Part shown: one piece after another, positions 5,800-45,187 of the stretch
Layout of the letters: the number at the start of each line of letters is the position of its first letter
Numbering within the stretch: the first letter of the stretch is position 1
Assembly (NCBI RefSeq): GCF_000143415.4
Contig: NW_003314263.1
Location: forward strand, 1,304,165-1,368,164
Direction: 5' to 3'
Length of the DNA stretch: 64,000 nucleotides
Source of the DNA: Selaginella moellendorffii
Taxonomy: Eukaryota; Plantae; Lycopodiophyta
The notes under the pieces: generated by a model
Databases searched by the model: none
The model's input: the letters and a program-made list of their open reading frames with translations, nothing else
What the model was told of the DNA's origin: nothing
Position numbers and translations under genes: made by a program

Positions 5800-7497
5800 C
5801 TACTTCCATGGGAAAGCCATGACAAACTGCTGAACTCGAGACATCGCCGGTAGCGCCTGCTGGTACGTGTCGCCATCATCTTTCTTATACTCTTGAAGGC
5901 TGTAGGTGTCGAACTTGGAGTCAGGAACCACGAAGATGAGCTTGTAGAGCCTTGGGATGGGCAGCTGCTTCTTCTCATGCCATATATCATACTCTTGCAC
6001 CACCTCCCATATTGCCGACCAGAAGAGTTTATGATTCCGGGAGACGGTATCCTGGAAGATGATGTCGGGAGTGAATAGTGAGTCGAAGGCCTTCTGAGTA
6101 GCAGAATACGGCTCCACAAAACAAGCCTCTGGGAGGCTTGCTAGGCCAGTGGCTACCTCGGCCCCTGGTCGCCTTGCATCCTCTGTGCTAGCTGTGTCCA
6201 TGTAGATATTGAAACCAGCTTTGTCCACCTGCTTTTTCTTCCTCCGCCCCGAACTGGTGCCCCTCTCATCAACCGGGATGTCGCTTGTGATTTCCCAGCG
6301 TCGCAACCGCCTAAAATGCTGTGGCTTAAGAGAAATAGATGGAGAGCAGCTTGAGCTTGGGCCATTGAGTGGCCTCATCTTGAACTCTCCACCTCCACTT
6401 CTGACCGTCTTGTGGAAGTGCCTCTCGAGAACCTTGCCTGCTAACGACTGGGCAGAAGGAATTTCCTGACAGAAGTCGAAGAAATCCTTGACTGCTTCAA
6501 AACCTTGTTCTTCGTAAAGATCGCACACCCTCTGCTCAATATACTCCGAGCCAAAGCACAGCTCCTTCTTTGTCACCCTGTAACAGTACCTCTCGTTCAA
6601 ATCCACCACGTTAGGAAGCTTATAATGCAGCAGATAGTCTGACAAGTCCGCACGTTTCTCCCCGTCCCCAGCTGCATGCCCGATTACTGCCTTCCAGTCA
6701 CTAGCACTTGACGCCGCGTTGTCCATTTCACTTTTCAACTTGGCCAGAGACATCTGCTCATCCAAGATTAAACGCGGCAGGCCCCCGCAGATCTCATAGC
6801 GCTGCTCGATGTCACGGTCACTGAATTCCAACTGCAGCTCATCTCTGCAAGCCTTCAAATCTTCCAAGCTCCAAGCTTCAAGGTGACAAAGGATGCCTGT
6901 GTCCTTGGAACACTCGTGATAGCCACGCCTGCCTGGGGAGACGCACTGAAGGAGAGGGCCGTAATGCCCTGCTACACCCCTGGATTCACCGTCGATTATC
7001 AGCCAGATGCTCTTCATAACCCAGGCCGGTGGAATCACATAGGCGAGTGACACCGAAACCAGGGGATCCTCCAAGGAGAAGTCGTAACACAGATAGAGTG
7101 GATTGTCGCCTTTGGTCCTCCACACCACCTTGTTCTTGAGCTTGGCTTGCTTGTACAACCAGTAATGTCCAAAGTAGCTCTTCCCAATCCCAGGCGTCCC
7201 CACAAGGTGAAAACTGAACCTCCGTACCCGTTTCCGCCTCTTGGGTGCTGTGTCCTTGTTTGCATCTACAGGAGTACCTGTTCCGGAGGCCATAATCAGT
7301 TGAATGTACTCCTCCAGAAGGTCGTAGTTTGGATGAACCCACAGCGGATGCAAAGATTCATCGCCCAAAAATCCCGAAGGTACGTCCAACACGCCATTTT
7401 CCACCTCTGCAGCAGCAACCTCCCTACCATAGATCGCATACGGCTCAATCGGAACAGCCACCGCTGCGACTGCCCCAGCCGCCGCTGCAGACGCCAT
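5800..7497 (-). CDS. Crinkler/RHS (CR)-type protein: P-loop CR-NTPase plus C-terminal restriction-endonuclease-fold (CR-REase) domain, intronless, 565 aa
   Basis: Walker A LVGTPGIGKS, Walker B WLIIDG, VSP, WSLEDL, YEICGGLPRLIL, FGSEYI, GKVLERHFH. REase-like part: P..ATQKAFDSL, IIFQDTVSRNH, KLIFVVP, VQQFVM. Basic NLS-like patches PKRRKRVRR and RRKKK. Confidence 0.8.
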   Translation of the reverse strand: MASAAAAGAVAAVAVPIEPYAIYGREVAAAEVENGVLDVPSGFLGDESLHPLWVHPNYDLLEEYIQLIMASGTGTPVDANKDTAPKRRKRVRRFSFHLVGTPGIGKSYFGHYWLYKQAKLKNKVVWRTKGDNPLYLCYDFSLEDPLVSVSLAYVIPPAWVMKSIWLIIDGESRGVAGHYGPLLQCVSPGRRGYHECSKDTGILCHLEAWSLEDLKACRDELQLEFSDRDIEQRYEICGGLPRLILDEQMSLAKLKSEMDNAASSASDWKAVIGHAAGDGEKRADLSDYLLHYKLPNVVDLNERYCYRVTKKELCFGSEYIEQRVCDLYEEQGFEAVKDFFDFCQEIPSAQSLAGKVLERHFHKTVRSGGGEFKMRPLNGPSSSCSPSISLKPQHFRRLRRWEITSDIPVDERGTSSGRRKKKQVDKAGFNIYMDTASTEDARRPGAEVATGLASLPEACFVEPYSATQKAFDSLFTPDIIFQDTVSRNHKLFWSAIWEVVQEYDIWHEKKQLPIPRLYKLIFVVPDSKFDTYSLQEYKKDDGDTYQQALPAMSRVQQFVMAFPWK

Positions 7498-8057
7498 TTC
7501 CTAGCTTCTAGAACCCGGTGTACATAGTTTACATAAAACTTCAGTTTAGGACTTAAGGCACAATCATAACAGAATTGTGAGATGCGTTTAGTTTATCGAG
7601 CTAGCTACAAGCTGACGGAATTTGTCTGGCAAGTGAGCCTCGTAATCTTCCAATCGATCCCTAACCTTACCACTTTCCCAGCGGACGAGCGTGGACGCCG
7701 TGAATCAATCCTCAAAGGATGATCAGAAACTCGCCATGCCGTTTTGTCGCCCACATTCACTCTCACCAATGTCGTCGGCTTCTCAATTCCTCGTAGATCA
7801 CAGATTCACCTCGCACACAATCTGATTCAATCCATCCCAGAATCATTCAATCATTCAATCAATCAAATTTCAGCTGGGCACCAGCTGCGTCCAAGCGACG
7901 GCACAATCTCTCCCACAAACAGGATCAACAACGGCCTCCCCTCGCCTCCCCTTGCTTCTCAAGAACGGCATCAAGCTCCGACACGCTCGTGTCCACAATC
8001 ACCATCACCCACAAACCACCCGATCGCGTTCTTCCACCATTCTCACGCTTCCAAAGA

Positions 8058-11000
8058 TGTAGCACGTAAGCCGTCGGATCCTTCTCATCCAGCTCCACCA
8101 ATCTCTCTTACGCGATCTTCCCCACCTCCACATTCTTCCACTTGTGAAGTTGTGACACGCCCCAAGAATCGCAGTCCAAGTCAGGCTCGATCGGCATCTA
8201 ATTCACCAATCTCAGCGCCTCGCTCAGGAAATTCGCCCGCCCCAGAAGATCCACAATGCAGTTGTAGTGGATGATGTTGGGAATCACTCCGTATTTGTTC
8301 TGCATCTCCTCCAGGAAATCCTTGCCTTTGCAAGTCAGCCCCATGATTGCAAGCCGAAAGAAGATGAGTGAGCGTGATCTCGTTGGGGACGACTCCTGAC
8401 TTCTCCTTCATACGCTCAAACATCTCCAAACTCTGCTTCCAATCCCCCATTTGGCTGTAGCCACTCAGAAGCGCATTCCAGCTGCACAAATCCCTCGCAG
8501 ATATCGAGTTGAAAACCATCTTCGCAGCTTCCATGCTTCCACATCTCCCGTAAAAATCCACCAAGCAAGTTGCCACCGGAACATCCTCTTCCAGCCCGCA
8601 GCTCTGAATCTCCCTGTGGAAGAACTTACCAGTTCCAGCTGTTGAAGTGAAATCTGTTGTTCTTGCTCTGCTTTTCTTTCATGGTATTAGAGATCAGTTT
8701 CTGAATTCTTTCTTCTCCTTTCTTTGTGTCTCACATCATGAGCTGCAGCAAAGTTGGATTGATCTTGCTACAGGGAGTCACTGCCTTTGATGGGAGGAGA
8801 GGGTTCAACACCTGGTCCGAGAAAGTGATGCGTGTGCTGCAGATGGAAGAACTCTGGGAAATCGTTTCACCATCGACAATCACTGCAGATGCCCATATGC
8901 GACGAACCCCTGCTGCGTTGGGAGCTTCAACTTCGGTGGAAGGAGAAGTCGTGGATGAAGAGGCAATTCGTGCCTCTATTGCAGCAGCTCGACAACAGCT
9001 TGATCCTGGGAACAGGCTGTGCTGGAGAAGAAGGAATCTCGAGCAAAAGAATTGATTCTTTCTAAGCTTGCAGATGCCCTTATGATGCGTTTGCGTCATA
9101 AGAGTGCTTGTGAGATTTGGGCTCATTTTCACAACAAGTATGCTGTTCTTTCCCTCTCCAAGATTAGCATGGTCGAGACTTGCATTCGTGAGACCCATTT
9201 TCATCCAGGCGAGAACTTTGAAGAGTTCCTCGCCAAGATGCAAGACCTGTGGATGGAGCTTGAAGGCAGTTTAGTGGCATTCAACGAAAACAAGAAAGTT
9301 TTGGTGCTTTGCGAGGGCATACAAGATTTTTCTTTTAGTTCTTTTGTCCCTACCGTTCACATGATGTCACTCAACTTTGAACAAGCTGAGCAAACTTTAT
9401 GCTCAGAGCTGGCTGCGAGAGGTTTGATTGTGGACTTTGATCAGAGGCCTTCTCATGTTTTAATCTCACAATCTACATCAAATGTTTTTGCATCAAGCGA
9501 TCAGTCAGGGATTGATTCAGCTCTGTGGGCTGGAAATCATCAAGGCAGAGGAGGCCACGGAAGAGGAGGATGGCAGAGGTCGCAGGTTTAGGGGAAATCC
9601 GCAGAAGCAGCAGCACAATTCAAGGAATTCTGGTAAAGAAGCAGCAGTTTGAGATTATTTTGTGGGCAAGAACAAACAGGAATGCTGGACCTGTGGGATG
9701 CCAGGACACTACTCCAAGGATTGCCCAGTTGCAGCTTGGCTGCAGCACATGAACATAGGGCTCGCAGTAAATGCTCACGAAGGGGAAATATAGGAACTTG
9801 CAGCATCATCTGAGATAGTAATTTCAAACGTTTCTGAAAAACTAGGTTCAGAGAGACACCTAATGCAAAGATGGTTGAACTTTATGCAGTTGCGTGCTGC
9901 GAAAGTGAAGTGCATTCGTATGGGAGATGGAAGCATTTTACCTGTTCGCGCAACTAGGGATGTGCGAGTTCCACTGGGAAGAAAGTCTCTACTCTTGAAG
10001 AATGCGTGGTATGTTCCAAAGATAGTGAAGAATCTGGTTTCTATAGCCAGGTTTATGGATGAAGGTTTGGATGTGAATTTCTCCAAACATCAATGTCAAG
10101 GTCTTGCAAATGGTCGTCCATTACTACATTTTCCTAGATATGTTTGAGAAGGAGATAGCTTCTGGAAAAAATTTGAACGCTCCTGAGATGTGCATGACTG
10201 TAGATAGTTCTCTCTAGCATGCTCGACTTGCACATGCCAATCCCCCTCTCATCAGGCGTATGCAGAAGCAGGAGCTTGTGGATGGCTTTAACAACCACAT
10301 TCTTCAAAGTTCAGTGAAATGTCACACTTGCATTCTTGGTAAGCAAACCCATTGTACTTTCAAACCTGCTGTGATCAGAAGCACTCGTCCCTTGCAGCTC
10401 GTTCACTCAGATATTTATGGACCCATGCGACTGTTTGCTCAGAATGGTGCAAAGTGTTTTATGATGTTTACTGATGATTTCTCCAGGCACATGGACGTCT
10501 TCTTCCTTTGTCACAAAGATGAAGTCTTCAGCAAATTCAAGCAATTTGTAGCAGAAGCCGAAGTGAAAACTGGTCAAAGGGTTGGTTGTTTATGTACTGA
10601 TTCAGGAGGGGAATACATCAACAAGTCCTTTCAGCAGTTCTGTGTTGAACGAGGAATTCTTCATCAACGCTCTTGCTCTCATACCCCTCAACAGAATGGA
10701 GTCTCTGAGCGCAAGAACAAGACAATCATGAACACAGTTTGGTGCTTCCCTCAAGAATCAGGACTATCAAAATTCCTCTAGGCTGAAGCAGTTGGATCAG
10801 CTGTGCACGTTCAAAACCTCCTCCCTCATTCTCGCAATCCCAACAAGATCCCAAAAGAGCTTTGGACTGGTCAAAGACAATCAGTGGTGCATCTCAGGTG
10901 TTTTGGTTGTTTAAGCTTTGCAAAAAGGGTTGATGAGCATCTCGGTAAGTTGGAGAGCAGAAGCAAGCTGGCATTTCTTGTTGGATACGACTCCAATTCA

Positions 11001-14000
11001 AAAGGATATTGCCTGTACCAGCCTGGTAATCATCAAATTTTTGTAAGCACTGACGTTCGTTTTGATGAAGGAACACTATAAAGATTGCGAAGGAAGCTCG
11101 GATCAAAATGTGAAATGGAGTTGGGATGGTGTTGAAGACGTTGATGAAGATGACGATGATCTAACAATCATCTATCCCTCATCTCCTTCAGCTGACAATC
11201 ATCCAACACCAGTCTCTGGATCTTTTCTTCCTGAAGAACAGGGCGATGCTGCTCATCGTGCACAAACTGGAGAAGTCGACAAGCTCACACATGATCTACC
11301 ATTCAACATGGAGAACTATGGGTGAACATCATCTGGATGATCAAGCAAAGCACCTCATCCCAAGCAGTGGTCTTTTGCAGCAATAGAAATAGCTTCTGAA
11401 CTAGTCAACTTTAAGCAGGGGATTCAAGGTCCTGATGCAGATAAGTGGATTTCAGCAATGCAAGATGATTTGAATTCTCTTGATGAGAACCAGACTTATG
11501 ACTTGGTGGAAGCTCCTGAAGGATGTGAAGTTGTCAGATCGCATTGGGTGTTCAAGCTTCACAGAAATGATCAGTTTAGTGTTACAAGGCAAGACTTGTT
11601 GCTCAAGGATATTCACAAATTCTTGGAGTGGATTTTGATGAGATGTTCTCACCAATTGTGAAGTAGACAAGCATGAAACAGCCTTTCTTAATGGGAACTT
11701 GAAGGAGGAGATATTTATGCAGCAACCCCCAGGCTTTGAGCTTTTTGGATCACAGCGCTCTGAACTCGTCTGCAAGCTTTGCAAGGCTCTTTATGGCCTT
11801 AAGCAGGCTTCCCATCAGTGGTATGAATATTTGAATTCTTTTCTTATGGGTCTCATTATGCAGAGGTTGAACAGCGATGGAAATCTATATCTTCTTCAGC
11901 AGGGTGATCACTTTGTTGTGATGGCAGTTTATGTGGATGACTATTTGATTGTCAACAACAATGACACTGTTTTGAAGGATGTGAAGATCAAACTCATGAA
12001 CAGGTTTGTGATGAAGGATTTAGGAGCTGTGTGGCAGCTGTTAGGATGGAAGTTGACAGGGATGAAGCAGACAGGACAATCATCCTCACACAACGCCAAT
12101 ATGTGAAGAAGCTTCTCAACCAGTTCAACATGACAAGTTGCAAATCTGTGGCTACACCAATCATCACTGGCATCAAGTTCAGAAGTAAGATGGATGATTT
12201 ATTTGATTAGCCCTCGGTCTACCGATTGCTTGTTGGAGGACTACTCTATCTCATCAACATGACTTGCCCCGACATCTGCTTTGCCGTTGGTCTCCTCAGC
12301 CGATACATGCAGTTTCCAAGTTTTTGTCATTGGCAAATGGCAAAAAGAGTTTTGAGGTATTTGAAAGGACAAGCTGCTCATGGATTGGTTTACAAATGCT
12401 CAGGTCAGTCCAAACTTGTTCTTCAAGCTTATTGCGATGTAGATTGGGCTGGCAACTTGAATACACGACATTCAACCTCTGGAATTTGCTGTGTAATTGC
12501 TGGTGCTGCGGTTTCATGGGGAAGTAAGAAGCAAATGATGGTTGCTCTTTCCAGTGTAGAAGCAGAGTACGTAGCTGCCAATACAGCAGTAAGGGAGATC
12601 ATCTGGCTTCTTCGATTACTTGGAGAACTCAATCAACAACAATCAGATGCGACCATTCTACATTGCGACAGCAGAAGTGCAATCGCCATGTCAAAAAATC
12701 CTGTGTTTCATGCTCGTACAAAACATATAGATGTGCAGCATCACTTCATTCAAGAACGTGTAGCAGCCGGAGATCTTCATCTGGAATACATTCCTTCACA
12801 GTATCAGTTGGCAGACCTTCTAACCAAGCCACTTTCAGAGTTCACATTCATCAAGCTGAGGAATCAACTTGGAGTGTCAAGCGCCCTCAACTTGAAGGGG
12901 GAGTGTAAGAATAATGATGAACACAACAAGCAAGACAATTTATATCAGAAACAGTCCGAATAGCGATCAGATCTCTGGTGATTTCCGATTTGATTGAAGT
13001 TGTATATATATACAGCCATACATGAATCAAGGTGCGTGTTAAAGTGAAATCCATTGTTCTTGCTCCGCTTTTCTTTCACCAGCAGCCATCAAACTTCCGC
13101 AGGCCGTGAGTGCAGCTACAAATGTCGCAGAGTTCATTGTCACCCCGTTCAGATCCATCTCACACACCACCTCCAGAGCTCGTTTGTTCTTCCCATTGTC
13201 GACATATCCCTGTATCAAGCACGTCCATGAAACAACGTTCCGCTTCACCATCTTGTCAAAAACTTCTTGAGCTTCCGCCATACTGCCACACTTGGCGAGG
13301 AGATTCACCACTACAGTCTCCACGTAAACGTCCCAGCATCTGTTCCTCACTGCTTGAAGATGAATCCTCTTGCCTTTCTCTAACCAGTGATTCAAGCATT
13401 TCTGCTCGGCTGCCAAAGCAGTGCAGGCTGTGATTGCAGTGACGAAAGTTCTAGCAGCCGGAGGAGCTTCAGCTTCTTCGGCCATGCCTTCGAACAGTTT
13501 CAGTGCGACTTCGCTCTTCCCGTTATCAACGTATCCTTGCATCAGAGCAGTCCAGAAAACCACGCTGCAGCTGCTCATCTTGTCGAGTGACAAGCAGCTG
13601 CTGCGACAACATTTTCGTCCAGAACACGCTGGTGGATATGTATGCCAAGCTTGGCAAAATGCAGCAGGCCCGTGACGTCTCACCCGGGAATGAATCGACT
13701 TTCCTCTTTTCAGCCAGTTGCAGCTTCCCACAGCCCTCGCTGCTAACGAAGTGCAAGCAGTCAGTGGAGCAACGAAAGTTCTAGCGTTGGGGATTGTCGA
13801 ACTCATACCGTCAAAAAGCCTCAGAGCGAGCGCACTCTCGCCGTTGTCAACGTAACCTTGCAGAAGAATCGTCCATGAAACCGCATTACCATGCAGCCGC
13901 ACCTCGCATAAAGATCAATCAGCGCATTCTGCACGAAGGAGTTGTCGGAGCAGTTCTTTTCCAGTGCTTGCCGATAGATTTCTTCTCCCTTTTCTAACCA

Positions 14001-14442
14001 TCTCCTGGAGTTTCCTCTCTGTTCAACAGCCAAAGCAGCACAGCCCGTCAGTGCTGCAACTAGAGTTCTCGCATCCGAGCCAGCTTCATCGCACCGCAAT
14101 GTCCGTAGAGATCGATCAAAGTGTTTCCAACGAAAGAATCAAAACAAGCCTGTGCATGAATGATTTTTCCCTTGTCAAACCATCTGCTGCAGTCACCACC
14201 TCAAGCTTCTGCTGCTAAAGAAGTGCAAGCTGAGAGCACAGCAACATAAGTCCTAGCATCCCGAGCAGCAGAATTTCCCATACGATCGAAAATCTCCAGA
14301 GCCAACTTGCTCTTTCCATTGTTGACATATCCCAGAATGATGCAGTTCCAACAAACTGTATTAGGAGAGGAAATCCTGTCGAAAATCTTCCAAGCCTCAA
14401 CAACGCTTCCATGCTATTGCACTTTTCTAGAAAGGTGACCAT
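8058..14442 (-). pseudogene. PLS-class pentatricopeptide-repeat (PPR-E) pseudogene interrupted by a Copia element
   Basis: Repeated motifs VSWTILLQGYVDNG..ALRLFD.M, KCGSMAEAQEVFDKMVKRNVVSW and WNALLSGYSQMG. E-motif relic WTAILGAC..WKNVEVGKIA*ERLVELDEKDPTAYVL. Several frameshifts. The frame rejoins across the insertion as ...CGSLMAAG|TGKFFHREIQSCGLEEDVPVATCLVDFYG. Confidence 0.9.
8640..13078 (+). mobile_element. Degenerate Ty1/Copia LTR retrotransposon with 5-bp TSD CCAGC
   Basis: TSD ccagc at 8635-8639 and 13079-13083; TG..CA termini. PBS tggtattagag (tRNA-Met-like) at 8682; PPT gaagggggag before 12904. Order is gag, integrase (VHSDIYGPM, TDSGGEY, TPQQNGVSERKN), RT (YVDD), RNase H (YCDVDWAG), with stops and frameshifts. 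Confidence 0.95.
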
Positions 14443-14455
14443 TGCGTCTTTCTTT

Positions 14456-17400
14456 TGTAGTATTATGCTTGGTGGTAAGTTGCACCTTACACTTTGTTAA
14501 ACTCTATGAGAATAATAAGCTCTCACTAATCTTGATTTGGTCTTGGTGGCTCTGTGCCTTAGTTAAGGATGGTGATGTTCAACTTAATTATTTGAGGTTG
14601 AGATGTTGGTATCCATACTATAATTTTGTCTATGAGGAGGTTGTGTACTGATATGAGTGTGAGACACAAAATCCCTAGGCCCCAAAGTGGAGCCGGAAAG
14701 GGTGCCACGTGGTAGTGGCTGAAGCGAGAGCCAAACAAGTGTAACACGTTTGGACCAAAAGCTCCGACTTGAAAAGTCAAGAGCGGGAGTGGAACTCCCA
14801 AAGAAGTGCTCAAGGAACGAGCACAAAGCGAGAAAAAAGCGAGGTTCCAAAAAGGGACCCGAGTTGGAGTCCGAAGTGGAGTCCGAGATGGACCCGAGTT
14901 GGAGTCCGAAGTGGAGTCCGAGATGGACCCGAGTTGGAGTCCAAAGTGGAGTCCGAGATGGACCCGAGTTGGAGTCCGAAGTGGAGTCCGAGATGGACTC
15001 GAGTTGGAGTCCGAAGTGGAGTCCGAGATGGACCCGAGATGGAGTCTGAGGTGGACCCGAGATGGACCCGAGATGGAGTCCGAGATGGACCCGAGATGGA
15101 GTCTGAGATGGAGTCCGAGATGGAGTCCGAGATGGAGTCCGAGATGGAGTCCGAAGTCGAGACCGAGACCGGGACCGAGACCGAGACCGAGACCGAGATC
15201 GGGACCGAGAACGAGACCGAGGCCGAGGCCGAGACCGAGCCCGAGCCCGAGTCCGAGTCCGAGTCTGAGTCCGAGTTCGAGTCTGAGAGGGTGAAAGCCC
15301 AAAGCGTTCATCTCCCAGACCCTGAGGGGTTTGGTGAGCCCCAAAAGTATAGTAGGGGGAGGACTGCAGTGGAGCCAGTTTGGCCAGGAAAGGTCAGTTT
15401 GGCCCAAGAAGGCCAGACCCAGTGTTGGGTGATGAATTGACCACTGGGAAGTCCAAGACTAGAGTGAATACGGACCAACAAGCGGGGTAGCTTGGTGAAG
15501 TGTTCAAGAGCCGGCTCTAGTTCCCCCGGGAGATCGACTGGCCGATGCTCCCAATCCAAGTGTGGGTGGCACTACCTACTTGGATACCAGGCGTGGCTCA
15601 ACGGAACCTCGCTCTAAGCCCATGGCTAGAGCACCTAAAGGCGATAGGTGGGGAGAGTACCCAGGTGGCTCGCGTAAGGCCACGGTGTTCCGAAATGTCG
15701 TCCCAAAGGCCCAGACTGTGGAAAGGAAGAGGAGCAGTCCTCTGGGGTAGTGACCAAGGACACAGTCGTGTGGTGAGGAAGTCCCAGAGGACCGTGGGAC
15801 TTAGTGGTCGGGCCTGTGGGCCTCGATCCAGTGGCAGTGTTGGCAAACACGGCCAGGGGCAGAAAGGGACTTGATAGGAACTGACAAAGGGACTTTGGGG
15901 AAGGCGATTCCCCAGGTCTGTGGGCATCCTAAGGATGCTAAGGAGTGGATCTAGGATGACCCCTCGTAGACAGATGGCCCAGTCTTGGAGAGACGGGATG
16001 GTGATGCAAGTGGTATTGGACCATTTGCGCAGCAAAGGTGAATGGGCATGGCCTTAGCGTAATGGGCCGAGATGTCAGTGGTACCTTTGGGTGTCGGTCA
16101 TGGGATCGGACACGTGGAGCACTTGGACCAAGTGCAAAGGTTGAGTGGCATGGATGCCATTCTCGGGGCTAGCAAGCCCCAAGTCCTGAATGGGACTTAT
16201 GGAGGTTGTGAATGAGACTCCTCCAAGTGGTCGGAGGTGTGGATAAGTGACTAAAGTAGAATGGAAAAATTAGTTGCTTACAATGAGTTCATCTCATGGT
16301 CTTCATTTTGGTTTCCACTAAGTGTTGATCATGCATAGCTAACCTCTTCAAGACATGCTTAGAGCTAGTGGCTAAATGCATTAATAAACTTATTGCGGTT
16401 GAGTTGGATTCAAGTGGTCATTTAGTTTATACTTGTCCATGAACCTTTATCTCATACTTAAGGTATTACGTTCATGTTGGATGAGTATATGACTTGATGA
16501 TATGAGTTTAGTGTTGGGTCTTGTGATGGCAAGTTGAAGAGTGATTGTTAGTTGCTTAGCAACTAATGATTGCTTATAGACTTTGTCAAGGACTATTTGA
16601 CACTTACTTCTCTCGATGATGATTTAACAATGATGGGCTTGTTTTATTGGATGGTGTTGCAGAGGATCGTGTTGTTAAACTTACATGGGTTTTCTATGTT
16701 TGCATGTCAACTCTACCTCTGTCGATATTATTTAGTTACGTTTAGTCCGTAATGTTGGATTTCATAAAGTCTTGGATGTGGTGGATCACTCCTTGATGAT
16801 GTGTTATCTGTAACTGAGTATTGTTGGAGGATTGATCTTAGATATTGACTAAGGTATCTTTGACTTCAGTTAGCTTAGTTGCTAAAGAGTTTTGAGTGGT
16901 GATTCACTCTTGCTTTCTTCTAGCTTTATTCCAATGTTGATGGCATTGAAGTGACATCTTGTCATTGACAATATTGATATGAGATTCAAGTGAAATGAGA
17001 TGTCTCTCCTTATGATTGATATTAAATTTTATTAGTCTTGATGAAGATAGTGTTGATGATTTGGTTGTAGCTTTATGTTATTAACATTTGTACAATTGCT
17101 TGTTAGCAACTGTATTGATGTTCAAACAAGCTGAGTGGCAAGTTTGAGTTAGCTGTGTTCTAGACAAGATTATTTAGTAAGGGTTGAGCTTTGGCTTTCT
17201 TTGAAAAGTGATTTAGTCGTGGACTATGCTAGCCTTACGAGTGAAAGAGTTAGTGATTGATATTGAAGTGATTAAATCCTTGTTGGATTTGAGTTGGGAT
17301 ATATCAATCATTGATGACTCTTCTTATACTTGTTATAAAGTGAGTTATGTCTTGCTATAAATGGATTCATGAAGGATCATTTAGTGATCATTTATTAAGT

Positions 17401-21050: not shown

Positions 21051-21780
21051 AGGGGGGGGGGGGGGGGTTATAGGGGGTTTTAAATGTATAATAGGAATAG
21101 TGGGTAGGTCGGGCATGGTCGACCAACCTGAAGCATAGTTTAGCTTCCATTTGCATGCCTATCTTTGTTTTGCGTCTGGCTTGGGTCTAAGCCCAAGTTC
21201 CACACCATGTTAGTTGGTGGAGTATCCATGTTCTTGCGTTAGGCCACTAGTATGCCGAAATAGTGCCAAATTGTAAACGCTTGAGTTTGGACTTCCCGGG
21301 AAGTCACCCAACTTAGTACTATTCAAACCCAATGACACTTAATCCCAAGTATCCCAAGACCTTTAACTGTTTGGAAAAGGGGGTGCACTTTTGTTCAAGG
21401 GCCCTTTCCCTCTATATTTGAACCCCATAGATCGTCTCTCAAGTCGTTCCCTTTGGTTGCTTATACAAACTCTGTTTAGCTCCGTTTTGCGTGTTAGTCC
21501 TGGCATTGGGGTGTTGGTTGCTCTAAGGCTGTTCCAAGTCACTCCATGCTCCTATCCCTTCACTCCTTAGGTTGTATGTTTGAAAGTTGCTCTATAGTCC
21601 AGTTTTGCCGCTCCTTGGCTCTATGCTTAGGAGTTTAGCTCCGTACCTTCATTCAATGGCCCAAAGCTCTAAAACTCAAGTTCCACACCATTGTCCTTGG
21701 ATACGTGGCACGTGGTATGTGTTATATGGCATTAGGTTCCGTTTTAAGGTGTTGTCCTATGGTAAATCACCATAGGATAA
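21051..21780 (+). mobile_element. LTR-like sequence after a poly-G PPT, carrying an antisense 5S-rRNA-like segment
   Basis: Poly-G at 21052-21067, then aaatgtataata..gcatggtcgacc..ttttgcgtctg; a related sequence follows the poly-G at ~33000-33135. Right boundary uncertain. Confidence 0.5.
21289..21342 (-). other. 5S rRNA-derived fragment (box A to box C internal promoter region), not a full gene
   Basis: Minus strand reads ttaagtgtcattgggtttgaatagtactaagttgggtgacttcccgggaagtcc. It aligns ungapped with plant 5S as recalled (ttaagcgtgcttgggcgagagtagtactaggatgggtgacctcctgggaagtcc), 43/54 identical by eye. Confidence 0.75.
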
Positions 21781-22530
21781 ATGGTCAAAACCATATGTGC
21801 TACAATTCCGAGCTTGATCTGCTCCAATATATTTGGCTTCACACGAAGTAAGAGGCTTTGAAAACGAATGCCAAATTGCATTATTGGCTCAAATGGCCCT
21901 TGACGAAAATGATGCAATTGTTAGAAGGCATCATCACTATCGTCAGCATGTCTAAATGTGCATTTAAAGACATCCGAAAGAACACTTCAATTCTCGCGAG
22001 TGGCTACACTCAAACTATTGTACCACTTGAGCACCATCCCTTGGAGACACGTGAAAACTCACGTAAACATCAAGCATCATCCCAAAAATGATATATGGCA
22101 ATCATTGTGAAGTGATCAAACTAATGATACATATCATCCCTAAGATTCCCACAAAAGAACTTCGGCTAAACTCAAAGATTAGTATTAAGAGCAAGAGAAG
22201 CTATACCATGTACTGTGAATGCTGCCATCAACTAAGTTTGGTTGTTCAATTGCAATCACATAACATCAAGCAATTGCACCAACTATTGTTTCAGAGTCAA
22301 ACAAATCAATTGAATCTTACAATGTTTATAAATTATAAACATGTTTACAAATTATTTAATTATTTTTACATTATACTCTCCCTTAAATATATTTTAAATT
22401 ATTTTCTGCCTAGATATATCATCATAAATTAACTTTTCCCTAGCTAAATATAGATACGTTTTAAGATCTAAAATTGCTTCTAGCTTGAAGTTAGCAAAAG
22501 AACTCTTTCAGAATCCATGGCTCACTTAAT

Positions 22531-23823
22531 TCACGCTGCAGTCAACTCAAACGCGTAGTCCGAGCCCGTGACTATTTTCCTGAGCAAAAAAACGCCAAGA
22601 TCTAAGGTCTCGAGAACAAAAACACGATGACTCACCTCAATCTCACGCTACGAAGCTCACAGTTCGCAAACCTAAATCGCACAAGTGTAAGTACCAAGCA
22701 AATCTAGCATCCAAACACGCCACTTACACTGTCTTGTTCACAGCTTCGTCGCCAAACTTTGTCACAAGGTTGGTCAGAAAGCCTGCGTGGGAGACGACGG
22801 CAATCTCCTCCTCTCCACGACTCCATAGCCTGCAAGCTTGATCAGAAACTTACAACAGCTTTTGCAGACTGCCCACGTACCATTCTAGAAAAGCTCTCGC
22901 CCTTTTGTCGAGCTCCTCTTCTAGTTCTCTTCTGTCAGGCTTCCACAGCTCGTCCTGGTCCTGTTCGATCTGATAGAGAAGAGAAACAGAGTTGGATCAA
23001 GTCACACAACTCGATCAAGTCGAATCATCCTTACGTTCGAAAAGTCAATCCCTGGAAACTGAATTTCGGATTTGCTCCTGGGACTCCTCTGATCGCATGG
23101 CATGGTACCCTGTTCATCAAAACTTTGCGTCAACTAGCTACATTGACAGAGAGAAAAAATATGGGAGAGCCAACATACCAATTTCTCCCTGCAAAGCTCC
23201 AGTGCTACGAAAGGAGGGGAGTTTGCACTGGAGATGGCTGGTCGTGGACACCGTCCAACGTTGTCTACCATCAGAGGAGCTGCTAGTTGATCAGTGGTAT
23301 CAGTGAAATTCCCTCCTCCAAAAATCCCAGATGCAGTTTGGAGCGTCCTGGAAGGCAAACTTAGAAGAGTTCTCGAGAGGAGAAATCACACTACCGAGTC
23401 AAGGGCGATACCACAACAAGCTCCACTCGATCTCTCAATCCGGAAATCCTGAATTCCCTGTGAAGAAACTCAGCCTTGAAGGAGAGCGATCAATCATTTA
23501 CCAAATGAATGGAGGAAAGGAAAATCGAAATGGTGACTTACTTGTTCCCAGCCAGTAGCCGTGAGGCTCGCGTCGGCGTGCTCGTAGTAAATGGGCATCA
23601 CAGCAGCTGGGGATGAGGAGGGACGAGGAGGCGCTGGGGAAACGATACAGCACAAGAGAAGCCACAGGCATCGAAAAGCCCTCAAAAAGTGCTTGAGCGT
23701 GAGGCGCCGCCATCTCCCGTCCAGGAAAATCTTCCAGGAGCTCCTCATTTGCAGTAGAATCTCACCCTGGACGTTGTGGAAGGCTTGGCCATGGCGCACA
23801 AGGTGTAGCACCTTCGAATCCAT
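22531..23823 (-). CDS. Phosphoglycerate-mutase-like histidine phosphatase (copy 2, inverted)
   Basis: Near-identical to 1637-2925: RHG motif and the same exon structure; stop at 22531-22533. Confidence 0.85.
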
Positions 23824-23934
23824 CCTTTTCTCGAAGAACCCTAAAAAACGTCCACTATTTTAGCTCTTTCCGTGGCGCCAATTTTAAATTGCCAATCTAG
23901 GTTTGATATTTTGCCATTGCCCCGATTCGGGGGC

Positions 23935-24160: not shown

Positions 24161-24708
24161 TGGATTTTCATCCTTCGGATGTCTTTGTTTAGCTTTTCCA
24201 GCGGATTTACTGTAATTTGGAGCTTCGCACAAGCTTTGTTATCAAGGCATCTGCGAGGTATGGTGAGGTACTTTGTAGATTTGTGTGCCTGTTGGTACCA
24301 ACAATTTTAATAGCTTTTTACTCTCTTGAGAAACAGCTACGTCTCTATGTCTCACTCACGCACTCTTTTTGCCTGGTGAGCTGAGGAACTTGTGGCAATT
24401 ATTATAGCTGGAACTTACGTTTCCACTGGTTTTTGCGGGGATCCCTAATGCGTTTGGGTGCTTGAGAACTATTTCTTTCCACAGACGAGGTAAGCATATA
24501 GATCTTACAGTACTGATGTCTTCTTTGGGACAGCTAACGAGCTCCACATGCCAGGCCAAGTGGTACTTGCTGCGCTCATTTACATCCAAACTATATGCCT
24601 CGGTCGTGAAGAAATATTTCATAGCGCGACTGAAGCACCGATGCTCGTCCCTTGTCCGGGGGCGCCCGAAAGAAAGAAAGTATCTGCTCAGCACGCTTTT
24701 CACGTCCC

Positions 24709-27147
24709 ATGGCGGTTTGCTCTTTCGTGATTCTCCTGATGATTGGTGCCGTTACTCCATCGTTTACGCAGGATCAAGGCGCAGCGCCCCTCAACTCGAC
24801 ATGGATACTCGACGGCTCCTCGTCGCGCATTGTCCTCTCAGTGCCCGATGCAAAGTTCCCAGTTTTCGCCGGCTTTCTCCCCACTTGCGACCACTGCCCC
24901 AGGCCCCGGTATTACTTCTCGGTCTTCTTCCAGGATCCGAGCTCCAACCAGAGCACGCAGGTTGTATGGCGAGCAGGCCTCCCGATTTCCGAAGGTGGTA
25001 TGCTCAGCTTGACCGCAGATGGAAACTTGGTGCTATACAGAGATGGCCATGCGAAGAGTCCAGTGTGGTCGACAGGCACCGCCAGGAAAGGAGTCCTAGA
25101 AATGAGGCTAGACTATACCGGCAACTTGCTGCTCAACAAGGCCAAATATGATGGCACCGCCTGGCAGAGCTTCCGGAACCCGACCGACGCGCTGCTGCCG
25201 ACGCAAAATCTAGAGTCAGGAACGAGCATGGTTTCTAACAGCGTCCAAGAGGCGGAGGGGTTCCAAGGCTACTTCACGCTCGAGGTGAGAGTCTCGGAAA
25301 TAGTGATGACCGCCCAGGCGCCGGTGGCGCCTCAAATCTACAAACTGTGGAGAAATCCGAGTAGCCTCGACGTGGGTGACATGTCTCTCGAGTCTGGCTG
25401 CCAGCTCAAGATCTACACCACAGACGGGCAGCCCTGCTGGTCGACGCCATCTTTTTGTATCGACTCGACAACGCTGGAGGTGCTGAGGATACACCCCGAC
25501 GGGACATTGCGCTATGACAACCAGCCCGAAAAAGCCTCGGTGTATCTCAACGCGTTGCTCTTCGATGACGTAGAGGCTGTAAGCATCGGGGCTTGCGGGA
25601 AGAAGAGCGTCTTCGACGTGGAAACCAGGAAGTGTGGCTGTCCGCTGCTACAAGGCGAGAGATCATACTTCCAGCAGCTTGATCCGGCCGATGCTTCCAA
25701 AGGGTGCCAGCCTTGGGAGCCGGAGGACCCGTGTGACGGACTGTATAACTCGTCAAACCACGTCATGCTCCAAGCGGCTGGCTTCTACAACTACGCGCCG
25801 CTGCGATTCATGGCAGCCAACGAGGGAGACTCGTGCGTGAGCTCCTGCTTGGAGGACTGCGCTTGCAAGGCGGCGTTTGTCTCTAGCAACTCGTCCGCGA
25901 CGTGCTTCCGAGTGACCGAGTTCTACACGCTGCGCGGCAGCAGCTACAACACAACGCCGTCGTTCAAAGCGTTTCTCAAGGTTGAAAAGAAGAGACCATC
26001 CGCTCCAGAGATAATCGTCAAGCCTCAAGTCAGACCCCCTACCGGCGGCTGGAGCTCCAACGTCCAAGCCATCCTCATTGGCGTCTTCATGCTGCTCTTG
26101 GCGATGGCGACGGCAATGGTGACGTTCATCACTTTCTACTGGAAGAGAGCTAGCGACGCTGTGGACCAGGGCCAGGCTTTGTCGTCCGAGCTACCTCGGC
26201 CCTTCTCGCTGCACGAGCTGGAGGTGGCGACCGAGAAGTTTAGCAGGGAGATCGGGAGCGGGGGATTCGGATCGGTCTTCGAAGGTGTTCTTGCGGACGG
26301 GAGCCGGGTGGCCGTGAAGCGCGTGAGCGACTCCAAGCAAGTCCACAAGTTGTTTGAAGCCGAGGTGGTGGCCATCATCAGCATCCACCACAAGAACTTG
26401 GTGCGGCTCCGGGGATTTTGCTGCCCGAACTTGCTCGTCTACGAGTTCGTCGCCAATGGTTCTCTCGACCGCTGGCTGTTTGATGACGACAAGTTCCTGG
26501 ACTGCGATGCCAGATACTCGATCGCTCTCGACATCGCTCGGGGACTGTCCTACCTCCACGACGGATGCCGGACGAGGGTGCTACACTTGGACATCAAGCC
26601 GCAGAACATACTGCTGGACGAGAAATTTCGAGCAAAGATCTCCGACTTTGGGCTCTCGCGGCAAGGCGAGCTTCAAGCGGTGGACGAGATGGTCATCCGG
26701 GGGACTCCGGGATACATGGCTCCGGAGTGGCTCCACTTCCAGATTAGTGACAAGCTCGACACTTACAGCTTTGGAGTGGTGGTGCTGGAGATGGTCACTG
26801 GCAAGCCTGCGTGCTCTCCTTGCGGATCGAAGTTCCTGGCTGGAGGAGTTCTTGAGATGTCTCAAAAAAGGCCAGTAGTGGAGATCATGGACAAGAGGAT
26901 GAACTTTTCTTCACAATGTTTCAAGAAGATGGAGAAGCTGCTGAGAATTGGATTGTGGTGCGTCCAGAGTGATCCCGGCCAGAGACCATCGATGGGATAT
27001 GTCACGAAAATGCTGGAGGGATCCTTGGAAACAGTGGACGCTCCTCCAATCCCTCCCAAATCTCGCGCCGGGAAGGAGGAGGCAATCGACATGAGATCGT
27101 GCTCTTTGAGTGACATTGTGAGAGTTCATGTAGATCAACGGCTGTAA
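24709..27147 (+). CDS. G-type (B-lectin/S-domain, PAN) receptor-like Ser/Thr kinase, non-RD, intronless (RLK-A1)
   Basis: Signal peptide; B-lectin motifs (VVWRA, LTADGNLVL, WQSF.NPTD.LLP); PAN CxxxCLxDCxC; TM helix; GSGGFGSV, VAVK, HLDIKPQN, DFG, GTPGYMAPE. Confidence 0.95.
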   Translation: MAVCSFVILLMIGAVTPSFTQDQGAAPLNSTWILDGSSSRIVLSVPDAKFPVFAGFLPTCDHCPRPRYYFSVFFQDPSSNQSTQVVWRAGLPISEGGMLSLTADGNLVLYRDGHAKSPVWSTGTARKGVLEMRLDYTGNLLLNKAKYDGTAWQSFRNPTDALLPTQNLESGTSMVSNSVQEAEGFQGYFTLEVRVSEIVMTAQAPVAPQIYKLWRNPSSLDVGDMSLESGCQLKIYTTDGQPCWSTPSFCIDSTTLEVLRIHPDGTLRYDNQPEKASVYLNALLFDDVEAVSIGACGKKSVFDVETRKCGCPLLQGERSYFQQLDPADASKGCQPWEPEDPCDGLYNSSNHVMLQAAGFYNYAPLRFMAANEGDSCVSSCLEDCACKAAFVSSNSSATCFRVTEFYTLRGSSYNTTPSFKAFLKVEKKRPSAPEIIVKPQVRPPTGGWSSNVQAILIGVFMLLLAMATAMVTFITFYWKRASDAVDQGQALSSELPRPFSLHELEVATEKFSREIGSGGFGSVFEGVLADGSRVAVKRVSDSKQVHKLFEAEVVAIISIHHKNLVRLRGFCCPNLLVYEFVANGSLDRWLFDDDKFLDCDARYSIALDIARGLSYLHDGCRTRVLHLDIKPQNILLDEKFRAKISDFGLSRQGELQAVDEMVIRGTPGYMAPEWLHFQISDKLDTYSFGVVVLEMVTGKPACSPCGSKFLAGGVLEMSQKRPVVEIMDKRMNFSSQCFKKMEKLLRIGLWCVQSDPGQRPSMGYVTKMLEGSLETVDAPPIPPKSRAGKEEAIDMRSCSLSDIVRVHVDQRL

Positions 27148-28787: not shown

Positions 28788-31181
28788 ATGGCGGTTTGCT
28801 CTTTCATGATTCTCCTGATGATTCGTGCAGTTACTCCATCGTTTACGCAGGATCAAGCCGCAGCGCCTCTCAACTCGACATGGATACTCGACGGCTCCTG
28901 GTCGGGCATTGTCCTCTCGGTGCCCGATGCACAGTTCCCAGTTTTCGCCGGCTTTCTCCCCACTTGCGACCACTGCCCCAGGCCCCGATACTACTTCTCG
29001 GTCTTCTTCCAGGATCCGAGCTCCAACCAGAGCGCACAGGTGGTATGGCGAGCAGGCGTGCCGGTTTCTGAAGGTGGTATGCTCAGCTTGACCGCAGATG
29101 GAAACTTGGTGCTATACAGAGATGGCCAAGGGAAGAGTCTGGTGTGGTCGACAGGCACCGCCAGGAAAGGAGTCCTAGAAATGAGGCTAGAGTCATCGGG
29201 TAACTTGGTGCTCAACAAGATACACTATGCTAGCCCTGCCTGGCAGAGCTTCTGGAACCCGACCGATTCGCTGCTGCTGCAGCAAGGGCTGAAGTCAGGA
29301 ATGGGCATGGTTTCTAACAGCGTCCAAGAGGCAGAGGGATTCCAAGGCTACTTCACGCTCGAGGTGGGGACTTCGGGAATAGTGATGACAGCCGAGGCGC
29401 CGGTGTCACCTCAAATCTACAAAGTGTGGAGCAATCCGAGTAGCCTCAACGTGATCAAGATGTCTCTCGACTCTGGCTGCCAGCTGAAGATATACATGAC
29501 AGACTGGGAGCCCTTCTTGACGACGCCACCTTTTTGTACCGACTCGACAGCGCTCGAGGTGCTGAGGATACACGCCGATGGGAGTTTGCGCTTCGACAAC
29601 CAGCCCAAGATGGCGTCGGTGAATCTCAACGCTTTGCTCTTCAATGACTTAGAGGCTGTAAGCATTGGGGCTTGCGGGAAGAAGAGCGTCTTCGACGTGG
29701 AAAACAGAAAATGTGGCTGTCCGCTGCTGCAAGGCGAGAGATCATACTTCCAGCAGGTTGATCCCGCTGATGCTTCAAAAGGGTGCCAGCCTTGGGAGCC
29801 GGAGGGCCCGTGCGACGGACTGTATATCTCGTCCAAGCACGTCATGCTCCAAGCATCTGGCTTCTACAACTATGCGCCGCTGCGGTTCATGGCAGCCAAC
29901 GAGGAAGAGTCGTGCGTGAGCTCGTGCTTGAAGGACTGTGCTTGCAAGGCAGCGTTCGTCTCCAGCAACTCGTCCACGACGTGCTTCCGGGTGACCGAGT
30001 TCTACACGTTGCTCGGCAGCAGCTACAACACGACGCCGTCGTTCAAAGCGTTTCTCAAGGTTGAAAAGAAGAGGCCATCCGCTCCAGAAATAATCGTCAA
30101 GCCTCAAGTCAGACACCATACCGGCGGCTGGAGCTCCAACGTCCAAGCCATCGTCATCGGCGTGTTCGTGCTGCTCTTGGGGATGGCAACGGCAACGGTG
30201 ATGTTCATCACTTTCTACTCGAAGAGAGCGAGAAGCGATGCTGTGGACCAGGGCCAGGCTTTGTCGTCCGAGCTGCCTCGGCCCTTCTCCCTGCACGAGC
30301 TGGAGGTGGCGACCGAGAAGCTTAGCAGGGAGATCGGGAGCGGGGGATTCGGGTCGGTCTTCGAAGGTGTTCTTGCGGACGGGAGCCGGGTGGCCGTGAA
30401 GCGCGTGAGCGACTCCAAGCAAGTGCACAAGCTGTTTGAAGCCGAGGTGGTGGCCATCATCAGCATCCACCACAAGAACTTGGTGCGGCTCCGGGGATTT
30501 TGCTGCCCGAACTTGCTCGTCTACGAGTTCGTCGCCAATGGTTCTCTCGACCGCTGGCTGTTTGATGACGACAAGTTCCTGGACTGCGATGCCAGATACT
30601 CGATCGCTCTCGACATCGCTCGGGGACTGTCCTACCTCCACGACGGATGCCGGACGAGGGTGCTACACTTGGACATCAAGCCCCAGAACATACTCCTGGA
30701 CGAGAAATTTCGAGCCAAGATCTCTGACTTTGGGCTCTCGAGGCAAGGCGAGCTTCAAGCGATGGACGAGATGATCATCCGGGGCACCCCGGGATACATG
30801 GCTCCGGAGTGGCTTCAATCCCAGGTGAGCGACAAGCTCGACACCTTCAGCTTTGGAGTGGTGGTGCTGGAGATGGTCACTGGCAAGCCCGCTTCCTCTC
30901 CTTGCGGATCGAAGTTCCTGGCTGGAGGAGTTCTCGAGATGTCTCGAAACAAGCAAGTTGCGGAGATCATGGACAAGAGGATGAGCTTTTCTTCGCATCA
31001 ATGTTTCAAGAAAATGGAAAAGCTGCTGAGAATTGGATTGTGGTGCGTCCAGAGTGATCCTGGACAGAGACCATCAATGGGATACGTCACAAACATGCTG
31101 GAGGGATCCTTGGAAACGGTTGACGCTCCTCCAATCCCTCCTTATTTTCGAGCCGGGAAGGAGGCCATCGACATGACATAG
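28788..31181 (+). CDS. G-type lectin receptor-like kinase, non-RD, intronless (RLK-A2; tandem paralog of RLK-A1)
   Basis: Same architecture and motifs as 24709-27147, with high identity. Confidence 0.95.
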   Translation: MAVCSFMILLMIRAVTPSFTQDQAAAPLNSTWILDGSWSGIVLSVPDAQFPVFAGFLPTCDHCPRPRYYFSVFFQDPSSNQSAQVVWRAGVPVSEGGMLSLTADGNLVLYRDGQGKSLVWSTGTARKGVLEMRLESSGNLVLNKIHYASPAWQSFWNPTDSLLLQQGLKSGMGMVSNSVQEAEGFQGYFTLEVGTSGIVMTAEAPVSPQIYKVWSNPSSLNVIKMSLDSGCQLKIYMTDWEPFLTTPPFCTDSTALEVLRIHADGSLRFDNQPKMASVNLNALLFNDLEAVSIGACGKKSVFDVENRKCGCPLLQGERSYFQQVDPADASKGCQPWEPEGPCDGLYISSKHVMLQASGFYNYAPLRFMAANEEESCVSSCLKDCACKAAFVSSNSSTTCFRVTEFYTLLGSSYNTTPSFKAFLKVEKKRPSAPEIIVKPQVRHHTGGWSSNVQAIVIGVFVLLLGMATATVMFITFYSKRARSDAVDQGQALSSELPRPFSLHELEVATEKLSREIGSGGFGSVFEGVLADGSRVAVKRVSDSKQVHKLFEAEVVAIISIHHKNLVRLRGFCCPNLLVYEFVANGSLDRWLFDDDKFLDCDARYSIALDIARGLSYLHDGCRTRVLHLDIKPQNILLDEKFRAKISDFGLSRQGELQAMDEMIIRGTPGYMAPEWLQSQVSDKLDTFSFGVVVLEMVTGKPASSPCGSKFLAGGVLEMSRNKQVAEIMDKRMSFSSHQCFKKMEKLLRIGLWCVQSDPGQRPSMGYVTNMLEGSLETVDAPPIPPYFRAGKEAIDMT

Positions 31182-41065: not shown

Positions 41066-41416
41066 GGAAAGACTCGATTTTGTTCTCCTGAGATGAAATT
41101 ACCATCTTTGACAGTAGAATTGACTAAGCACACACTATAGTCAACCATGGTCAACTTAGACATTTTAAAAGACAGCTGGCTGACCTTGAAAACATCAAGA
41201 ATAAAGAAAGAAAGAAAGAAAGAAAACAAATATTGCACATAAGAGACTCAGCTATTAGCATAGTTCCTCACGAGATCACCAGGACGAACGAACTCCCTTG
41301 AAATGCACGTAACGAAAAAAGAATGGTCCTTGGAAAATCCCTCCGTCCGTCTCGTAAGAATCATCAAACGCGAAGAAAAGGGGAGATCTGCAAAGCTTCC
41401 GCCATTTCCATCAGCG

Positions 41417-44655: not shown

Positions 44656-45187
44656 TTTTTTGGCGCAGATGAGTACCTCTCTAGGCGTGTCATCTCCTTG
44701 GTAAGTGGCAGATGCAAAGGCTAGGTTGTCCATTCTTCCACTTGGTTGATCTCCCTTCAACGCAACTATTGGAGATATATGCTCTCATGTCATAAGAGGT
44801 CTATAGATGCCATTTTATTAATCCACGTAGAGTTATAACTCTTATAATATTTTCCATAAATTTTGAGGGCTAAGGTCCTGAGACGTCAGGTGATTTTTAC
44901 AGAGAAATGACAGCATTCTTCAAACTTTATGAAATTATAGTAAAATCTAAACTGTGTATGTGGCTTGGCAAAATTTAGGGCACTTTAAAAATGCTTTTGG
45001 CGCCCTTTAGGGCTTATACTCTCGCGGTCAGACTCTCGGGGACAACGTTACAGCCTCGAGAAGAACGAAACCATTCTTGTCCTCCTGAGACCACGATGCG
45101 CTAGAGCCGATCGATTTCACGCTACCTTACAACCCATCCCTTGCAATCACCTCTTTCCCAGGCTTGCTCGTTGTCTTCAAGCACCTA

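Follow-up and report, generated by a model that had tools for sequence, protein, structure and literature searches.

An intact, headerless Crinkler/RHS-type gene native to Selaginella moellendorffii encodes a predicted AAA+/STAND-like ATPase with a putative nuclease-like C-terminal module

The 64,000-nucleotide stretch of the Selaginella moellendorffii genome analyzed here (contig NW_003314263.1, positions 1,304,165 to 1,368,164; hereafter the window) harbors on its minus strand, at 5800..7497, an intact gene of the Crinkler/RHS-type (CR) family of NTPases. The open reading frame (ORF) comprises 565 codons and a stop codon, starts with ATG and is intronless. The ORF list and an identical public single-exon gene model, located on the 4.46 Mb scaffold GL377567.1 of S. 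moellendorffii, confirmed the intact 565-residue frame described in the initial annotation, and the probability of such a frame arising by chance is ∼1e-12 by our own arithmetic. The explanation considered here to be rather likely is that this is a native, headerless CR gene, the product of which is an ATPase-controlled, nuclease-like protein engaged in genetic conflict within the plant's own cells. The protein would act inside the cells that produce it, as it possesses neither a Crinkler header nor a conserved secretion signal. Binding and hydrolysis of ATP by an AAA+/STAND-like module, probably accompanied by oligomerization, would control the C-terminal module via a winged helix, and the C-terminal module would be a divergent PD-(D/E)xK-type domain that cleaves or binds DNA. 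Its role would most likely be in genetic conflict, either as defence or as what is left of a formerly selfish element that the host has retained, and not in housekeeping; nor would the gene be an active transposon today.

Membership of the protein in the CR family, i.e., an NTPase joined to a C-terminal module, was confirmed with high confidence by sequence comparison, because it is collinear with a header-bearing Crinkler, its motifs are near-invariant in the family, and its relatives include proteins named Crinkler. The header-bearing protein, P0023 of the glomeromycete Diversispora epigaea, has a complete Crinkler header at its N-terminus (PF20147, 73 bits, E = 3.6e-20, residues 5–108) followed by the same module as that of the query, with its Walker A motif at residue 184. 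It aligned collinearly with residues 96–542 of the query (BLASTP E = 5e-25; phmmer E = 2.6e-16). HMMER was run exhaustively against 1.84 billion representative proteins, and it retrieved 447 relatives with E ≤ 1e-3, of which 82 reached E ≤ 1e-10. The named relatives belong to Glomeromycota (Diversispora and Glomus), the chytrid Gorgonomyces, the dictyostelid Polysphondylium, Capsaspora, and the xanthophyte Heterococcus; those in Glomus and Polysphondylium bear the source label "Crinkler family protein", and one Selaginella paralog is labeled "Crinkler (CRN) family protein" in UniRef. The C-terminal 125 residues were detected in most of the relatives, so the two-module architecture is a trait of the family. 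Pfam matches among the relatives, i.e., nSTAND3 in 25 of 48 and RHSP in 9 of 48 (best RHSP E = 4.7e-6), agree with the Crinkler/RHS-type assignment originally proposed, albeit weakly, as they mostly fall under the curated cut-offs.

Direct searches with the query against Pfam, NCBIfam, and PDB sequences returned P-loop matches only, all of them sub-threshold. The best Pfam match was RHSP (PF07999; E = 0.023, 14.6 bits vs. a cut-off of 25), in which only residues 98–116 were aligned, and the match to TIGR01631 scored 9.9 bits vs. a cut-off of 89.75 (E = 0.18). No NB-ARC (PF00931), NACHT, or LRR match was found in Pfam at E ≤ 1, and the PADLOC defence models yielded no meaningful match. A word-index protein search using the whole protein, the family profile, or the C-terminal region returned, among the matches listed, the Selaginella paralogs or the query itself.

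All the motifs pointed out in the initial annotation were present, and they coincide with near-invariant columns in both family alignments, of 55 and 149 members. These are Walker A GTPGIGKS (100–107), Walker B LIIDG (166–170), GGLPR (238–242), G354/E358/H362, D472/Q482/T484/H489, and FVVP (522–525). In the alignment of 149 sequences, conservation in the N-terminal and NTPase part was 95% for Y58, 99% for G100, 100% for K106, 99% for D169, 100% for G238, 99% for R242, and 97% for S317; in the C-terminal part, it was 95% for E358, 90% for H362, 97% for D472, 91% for Q482, 87% for T484, and 91% for H489.

A full-length AlphaFold2 model built from the 149-sequence alignment attained a predicted local distance difference test score (pLDDT) of 86 and a predicted template modeling score (pTM) of 0.84, with disorder limited to residues 1–10 and 402–442. 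A Foldseek comparison of the model with PDB matched RuvB and CED-4 at a probability of 0.99–1.00, and clamp-loader subunits including RFC, Clp ATPases, NLRPs, and Avs3 at 0.9–1.0, in agreement with the AAA+/STAND-like fold that had been anticipated; the TM-scores on the query were low (0.22–0.26), as the query is multi-domain. The family profile also matched dynein AAA modules and NLRP9. The model thus shows residues ∼95–346 folded as an AAA+/STAND-like ATPase, in which the Walker A Lys, the Walker B Asp, and the lid Arg are intact. The Arg of the GG-x-P-R motif (R242) presumably occupies the sensor-2 position of the lid domain, judging from general knowledge of AAA+ proteins. As the alignment with the three-domain RuvB extends over ∼300 columns, we infer a core–lid–winged-helix arrangement over residues ∼95–400.

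The C-terminal module (residues 347–565) is proposed to be a divergent PD-(D/E)xK-type domain that cleaves or binds nucleic acid and acts on DNA. When modeled in isolation, it was predicted with a pLDDT of 89.2 and a pTM of 0.85. Its secondary structure elements follow one another as a helix carrying E358 and H362, a strand, a hairpin that opens with D472 and bears Q482-x-T484 in its second strand, another helix, and a hydrophobic strand with FVVP; in the model, this is compatible with the order of a PD-(D/E)xK core. For the restriction endonuclease (REase)-like tail proposed initially, the conserved motif pattern fits such a domain, and no significant fold or profile match was obtained. According to published work, the active site of one CR-REase clade (CR-REase7, perhaps not that of the query) contains a Glu that is followed three residues later by a His; in the query, H362 lies four residues downstream of E358. 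The disordered linker at residues 402–442 is missing from the glomeromycete Crinkler P0023 in the alignment.

Several observations weigh against a nuclease assignment. A Foldseek search with the isolated residues 347–565 gave no significant match (the lowest E was 0.4 for PDB and 0.07 for BFVD). The whole-chain search was dominated by the ATPase, with no nuclease fold reaching significance. No PDB sequence was matched by a profile of the C-terminal module alone that was built from DNA references, and profile searches yielded no nuclease family in Pfam, in PADLOC, or among PDB sequences. Further, the canonical (D/E)xK position reads Q482-x-T484 throughout the family, followed by H489, so the active site is atypical if the fold is that of PD-(D/E)xK, and E358 and H362 could alternatively be part of the winged-helix domain of the ATPase. 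These points, in particular the replacement of the Lys and of the second acidic residue of (D/E)xK by Q-x-T family-wide, would suit a non-catalytic domain that binds nucleic acid or protein and is attached to an AAA+/STAND-like ATPase without any cleavage of DNA. RNase H-fold proteins, phage tail-tube proteins, and unrelated folds in the weak hit lists fit such a domain as well. In the weak PDB list, however, PD-(D/E)xK enzymes recur (BstYI, OkrAI, BbvCI, N.BspD6I, SgrAI, XPF, and McrC), the secondary structure order is compatible with that of their core, and the E, H, D, Q, T, and H residues are conserved at 87–97% across kingdoms, which suggests an active site over a binding surface. Published work also classes the family as an REase family. 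A purely binding, non-catalytic tail is hence regarded as rather unlikely, and the putative nuclease-like domain is preferred.

The N-terminus of the protein was analyzed for the header that is typical of Crinkler effectors. No match to PF20147 was found in Pfam at E ≤ 1, and no header was shown in the upstream ORFs, which bears out the absence of an LFLAK or ubiquitin-like header noted earlier. The query starts ∼80 residues ahead of Walker A, about where the header of P0023 ends. The median position of Walker A among the relatives, many of which are metagenome gene calls, is 88, so a short N-terminus is common in the subfamily. The N-terminus had been described as nothing more than Ala-rich, which needs revision: the Ala/Val tract is confined to residues 1–15, and residues ∼16–75 form a folded, family-conserved subdomain that was confidently predicted (pLDDT of 82–98, given for residues 11–70), followed by residues 71–90 with a pLDDT of 63–67. 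The tract is restricted to the window copy and its near-identical second copy, and in the older paralogs the protein starts immediately ahead of the conserved YGREV motif. A transit peptide for chloroplasts or mitochondria was considered for the tract and rejected, as it is only 15 residues long and missing in the paralogs. The length of the tract differs between the two copies by a 4-residue indel, with a longer poly-Ala run in the second copy (L002 10001–10060), which is consistent with triplet-repeat slippage.

Two properties of the N-terminal region and the linkers speak against the proposed intracellular, DNA-directed action. The Ala/Val tract is hydrophobic (Kyte–Doolittle value of 2.2 over 12 residues) and possibly a signal peptide, where the initial annotation had seen none. 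Moreover, a nuclear location, as proposed initially from basic patches resembling nuclear localization signals, would depend on sequences that are not conserved. The basic runs are indeed present (KRRKR at 86–90, RRLRR at 396–400, and RRKKK at 418–422); they lie within low-confidence or disordered loops and are common to the 98%-identical second copy only. Some basic run tends to occur in the variable linker of the paralogs, at differing places.

The gene is native to the plant. It is located amid plant genes that include a PPR gene (13039–13806), a PPR remnant (8181–8576), His_Phos_1 and PIP5K genes, and four B-lectin receptor kinases, and its GC content at third codon positions (0.61) equals that of two of the neighboring receptor-kinase genes. 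No terminal inverted, direct, or long terminal repeats were found bracketing the gene, and there are no transposase or other element genes beside it. An origin from contaminating DNA, or by very recent horizontal transfer out of a fungus or an oomycete, an option kept in the initial annotation, might be suggested by the named non-plant relatives, all of which are fungi, amoebozoans, a filasterean, or a stramenopile. Against this, the gene lies within a scaffold of 4.46 Mb among PPR, B-lectin receptor-like kinase, and PIP5K genes, its composition is native, a second copy and several paralogs are present on other large scaffolds, and its nearest relatives outside an old, monophyletic Selaginella clade are only 22–27% identical. 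Such an origin is essentially excluded.

The second copy, P0006 (569 aa), is present on scaffold GL377665.1 (locus L002) and encodes a protein 98% identical to that of the window. The DNA similarity ends 56 bp past the stop codon, beyond which the downstream genes differ. Between the two copies, the coding sequence differs by 2.0% substitutions and one indel, which is 12 nt long and in-frame, whereas the 5′ flank (3.2 kb) differs by 5.8% substitutions and 17 indels, 12 of which are not multiples of three. Had the coding sequence gathered indels at the rate of the flank, ∼6 that break the frame would be expected; none was observed. The reading frame was thus kept open while the flanks gathered indels, whether the two copies are alleles or paralogs. 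As the assembly includes both haplotypes and contains several family members as pairs more than 90% identical, the window copy and P0006 may be alleles with a structural difference and not paralogs.

The substitution pattern provides a less favorable picture of constraint. The synonymous (dS) and nonsynonymous (dN) divergences between the two copies are 0.033 and 0.018, respectively, and the ratio of 0.54 is below 1, as constraint would have it, only mildly and not significantly so (one-sided p = 0.067). The divergence of the flank also forms a gradient (2.8%, 5.1%, and 8.0%), which could reflect gene conversion instead of selection. Ten of the 23 amino-acid differences between the copies fall within the first 50 residues. 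The gene could then be a decaying relic, i.e., a recent duplicate that has not yet been hit by a disabling mutation, and the partial copies or lost invariant residues at other loci of the family (P0005, P0010, and the P0011 group) would agree with this. Yet both copies are intact with none of the ∼6 expected frame-breaking indels, all the near-invariant residues are kept, and the substitution density of the coding sequence is one third of that of the flank. A relic is accordingly regarded as very improbable in comparison with a gene kept under constraint.

The surroundings of the two copies showed further structural differences. The region upstream of the copy on GL377665.1 is otherwise collinear, yet it lacks ∼4 kb that the window has at 10808–14658 and that contains the annotated PPR gene, so the two copies differ here by an insertion or deletion. 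PPR sequence at 7800–9250 on the minus strand of the window, and at 8383–9703 of L002, contains short ORFs in several frames, the longest of which encodes 131 aa with PPR repeats; this fragmentary sequence looks like a remnant carried in the common 5 kb segment. A 42-nt match between 8640–8681 and 13037–13078 ties the remnant to the annotated PPR gene. The decayed neighbors mentioned in the initial annotation are represented by this fragmentary PPR remnant just upstream, and the description does not hold for the annotated PPR (13039–13806), His_Phos_1, and PIP5K genes.

The S. moellendorffii genome contains roughly 6–8 CR loci: the window copy with P0006; P0002 beside the two-unit tandem model P0007; P0003 with P0008 and P0009; P0005; P0010; and the P0011 group. 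Identity to the query is 36–49% for the paralogs, except for the P0011 group, for which it is ∼28%. In a neighbor-joining tree constructed with capped distances, the Selaginella copies formed a single clade in 47 of 50 bootstraps, within which a copy of the Logan assembly of run SRR22405887 is nested. The Logan copy has no DNA-level similarity with S. moellendorffii, and its frame is apparently broken once by a stop codon. The window copy retains all the near-invariant positions; along with P0002 and P0003/P0008/P0009, it retains nearly all the invariant residues, several of which are lost in the Logan copy, in P0010, in the P0011 group, and in P0005, which is partial. Such a distribution is typical of a lineage-specific family that is old and has some decaying members; an element active until recently, or a gene transferred not long ago, would look different. 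Two of the public models look like fusions. The P0007 model (1125 aa) contains two complete CR units in tandem, and the P0005 model (751 aa; L007 8001–10905) has an Nse4_C domain together with a partial CR copy, beside which lies a separate Nse4_C gene.

The multi-copy, intronless nature of the CR gene also raises the possibility of a selfish CR-type element comparable to Medea1, persisting by spread or by killing non-carriers and rendering no service to the plant. There are precedents for this: combinations of CR-NTPase and CR-REase are described in published work as mobile elements of transposon origin that include Medea1 of Tribolium castaneum, and a headerless Crinkler-like gene of fish is described in PMC12957317 as a selfish genomic element. 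The similarity to the second copy, ending only 56 bp after the stop codon, and a repeat of ∼1.6 kb found within 10 kb of four of the five CR loci examined fit such an element too. It is opposed by the lack of terminal inverted or long terminal repeats and of transposase or element genes alongside, and by the 36–49% identity of the paralogs, which implies old duplications at a low copy number. In addition, the recent copy includes 3.3 kb of upstream host sequence with the PPR remnant, pointing to a segmental duplication or a haplotype pair and not to transposition of a lone gene. The 1.6 kb repeat, moreover, varies in distance, side, and orientation and is missing from the fifth locus. A present-day selfish element is therefore considered unlikely, and a host-kept gene of the kind proposed above remains the preferred explanation.

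The 1.6 kb repeat itself has an internal 12/35-nt tandem array and an identity of 82–89% among the loci (Table 1). It is missing at L007, and apart from this separate repeat, at its varying positions, no flank was found to be shared between the paralogs and the window. A fixed unit consisting of the CR gene and the repeat was considered and rejected on account of the variable position and orientation and the absence at L007. The sequence is probably an abundant genomic repeat.

The architecture of the protein was compared with that of known systems. CR effectors of the class comprising an NTPase, a helix-turn-helix (HTH) domain, and an REase were reportedly described by Zhang et al. in 2016, as known at second hand. 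In three papers (PMC5289972, PMC12957317, PMC11342252), NTPase + HTH + REase is given as the main or commonest toxin architecture of the Crinkler C-terminus, and CR proteins are reported in land plants and free-living eukaryotes. The proposal of an uncharacterized kind of system is not supported, as land-plant CR proteins have been published and one Selaginella paralog is already named Crinkler; no paper with Selaginella Crinklers as its specific subject was found in the open literature. The query shares with the Crinkler effectors of this class the invariant motifs, the three-part architecture, and the collinear order from the NTPase to the C-terminal module. Unlike them, it is devoid of the ubiquitin-like header and the LFLAK-type region, belongs to a free-living land plant, and is presumably not a secreted or host-translocated effector. 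In comparison with the fungal P0023, it contains an extra disordered basic insertion of 40 residues in the C-terminal module.

Trypanosome RHS proteins show a distant P-loop likeness, in which the Walker A region alone aligns and the query stays under the curated cut-offs; in contrast to them, the query locus has no retroelement hot-spot context. Medea1-type elements and the related CifB REases have the same kind of two-module architecture, whereas the locus of the query shows no sign of mobility or of a killer-rescue arrangement, and CifB is not among the fold matches listed for the C-terminal module. With the AAA+/STAND ATPases (RuvB, clamp loaders, CED-4/Apaf-1-like proteins, NLR NACHT, and Avs), the query has the core, lid, and winged-helix fold in common; it differs in having no repeat sensor domains (LRR, WD40, or TPR) and in bearing its effector-like module at the C-terminus. 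The likeness to plant NLRs is at the general level of the STAND fold only. Free-living animals possess AACRNL, a headerless Crinkler-like gene (PMC12957317), which provides a precedent outside pathogens for Crinkler-derived genes in which the N-terminal targeting domain is degenerated or absent. Its toxin module is an ADP-ribosyltransferase, whereas the query combines an NTPase with a nuclease-like domain, and it is flanked by hAT elements with which it amplifies, an association that was not found for the query.

The four nearby non-RD receptor kinases recorded in the initial annotation do exist; all are tandem, intronless B-lectin (G-type) receptor-like kinases of the HLD type (Table 1). Annotated kinases were absent within the 8–10 kb fetched per side around four other S. 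moellendorffii CR loci, the neighbors of which are PPRs, an aldo-keto reductase, a DEX1-like gene, RNase P p30, PRMT, Nse4, and epimerases. A functional tie between the CR gene and the receptor kinases was rejected, and their proximity looks coincidental, because it is not repeated at these four loci. Two other repeats were observed in the region: a repeat of ∼200 bp with 85–89% identity (window 21266–21472, L003 16853–17058, and L004 19146–19347), and a local duplication of ∼1.4 kb with 96.8% identity (1592–2986 and 22476–23864) in the His_Phos_1 gene region.

Table 1. Coordinates of the CR gene, its predicted parts, and neighboring features (window positions unless a locus is named)
Feature	Position	Strand	Basis or remark
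Complete intronless coding sequence of the headerless CR-family protein	5800..7497	-	ORF list, public gene model, homologues
Residues 1–15, Ala/Val-rich low-complexity tract	7453..7497	-	pLDDT 44; without counterpart in older paralogs
Residues 16–94, N-terminal subdomain (helix, small sheet, helix), then low-confidence loop with KRRKR (86–90)	7216..7452	-	Model, conservation
Residues 95–250, predicted P-loop NTPase core and start of helical lid; Walker A (100–107), Walker B D169, W209, GGLPR (238–242)	6748..7215	-	Conservation, Foldseek, Pfam in relatives
Residues 251–346, predicted helical and winged-helix-like region joining NTPase core to C-terminal module	6460..6747	-	Model secondary structure, RuvB alignment
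Residues 347–565, putative nuclease-like C-terminal module; E358/H362 helix, D472, Q482-x-T484, H489, FVVP (522–525), Q535, Q557	5803..6459	-	Isolated model, conservation
Residues 402–442, disordered variable linker/insertion within C-terminal module, with RRKKK (418–422)	6172..6294	-	pLDDT <50
Segment common with second copy on GL377665.1, ∼5.1 kb, 92.8% identity	5744..10808	.	blastn
Four tandem intronless B-lectin (G-type) receptor-like kinases	24652–27147, 28788–31181, 41303–43951, 45164–47719	+	Catalytic loop HLD, not HRD
1.6 kb repeat	14658–16282 (array 14820–15294); L002 4352–6741; L003 18744–20441; L004 494–2297		

Crinkler effectors are best known as weapons of oomycetes and fungi that are delivered into plant nuclei. 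The occurrence of an intact, headerless member in a plant bears on why toxin-derived genes persist in non-pathogens, and on the reuse by eukaryotes of STAND-ATPase/nuclease modules for self-defence in the manner of bacteria. The phenomenon as such has already been published, and the locus adds no new principle; it adds a well-documented, apparently constrained example in a lineage-specific family and offers a concrete, clean candidate for descriptive follow-up. A stronger proposal, regarded here as quite improbable, is that the lycophyte has kept a headerless, ATP-gated nuclease as a cell-autonomous executor of death or immunity, or that the gene is a Medea-like selfish killer in a plant. If either were true, it would be the first role assigned to a land-plant CR protein, and the executor would parallel, in a eukaryote, the STAND-nuclease defence proteins of bacteria.

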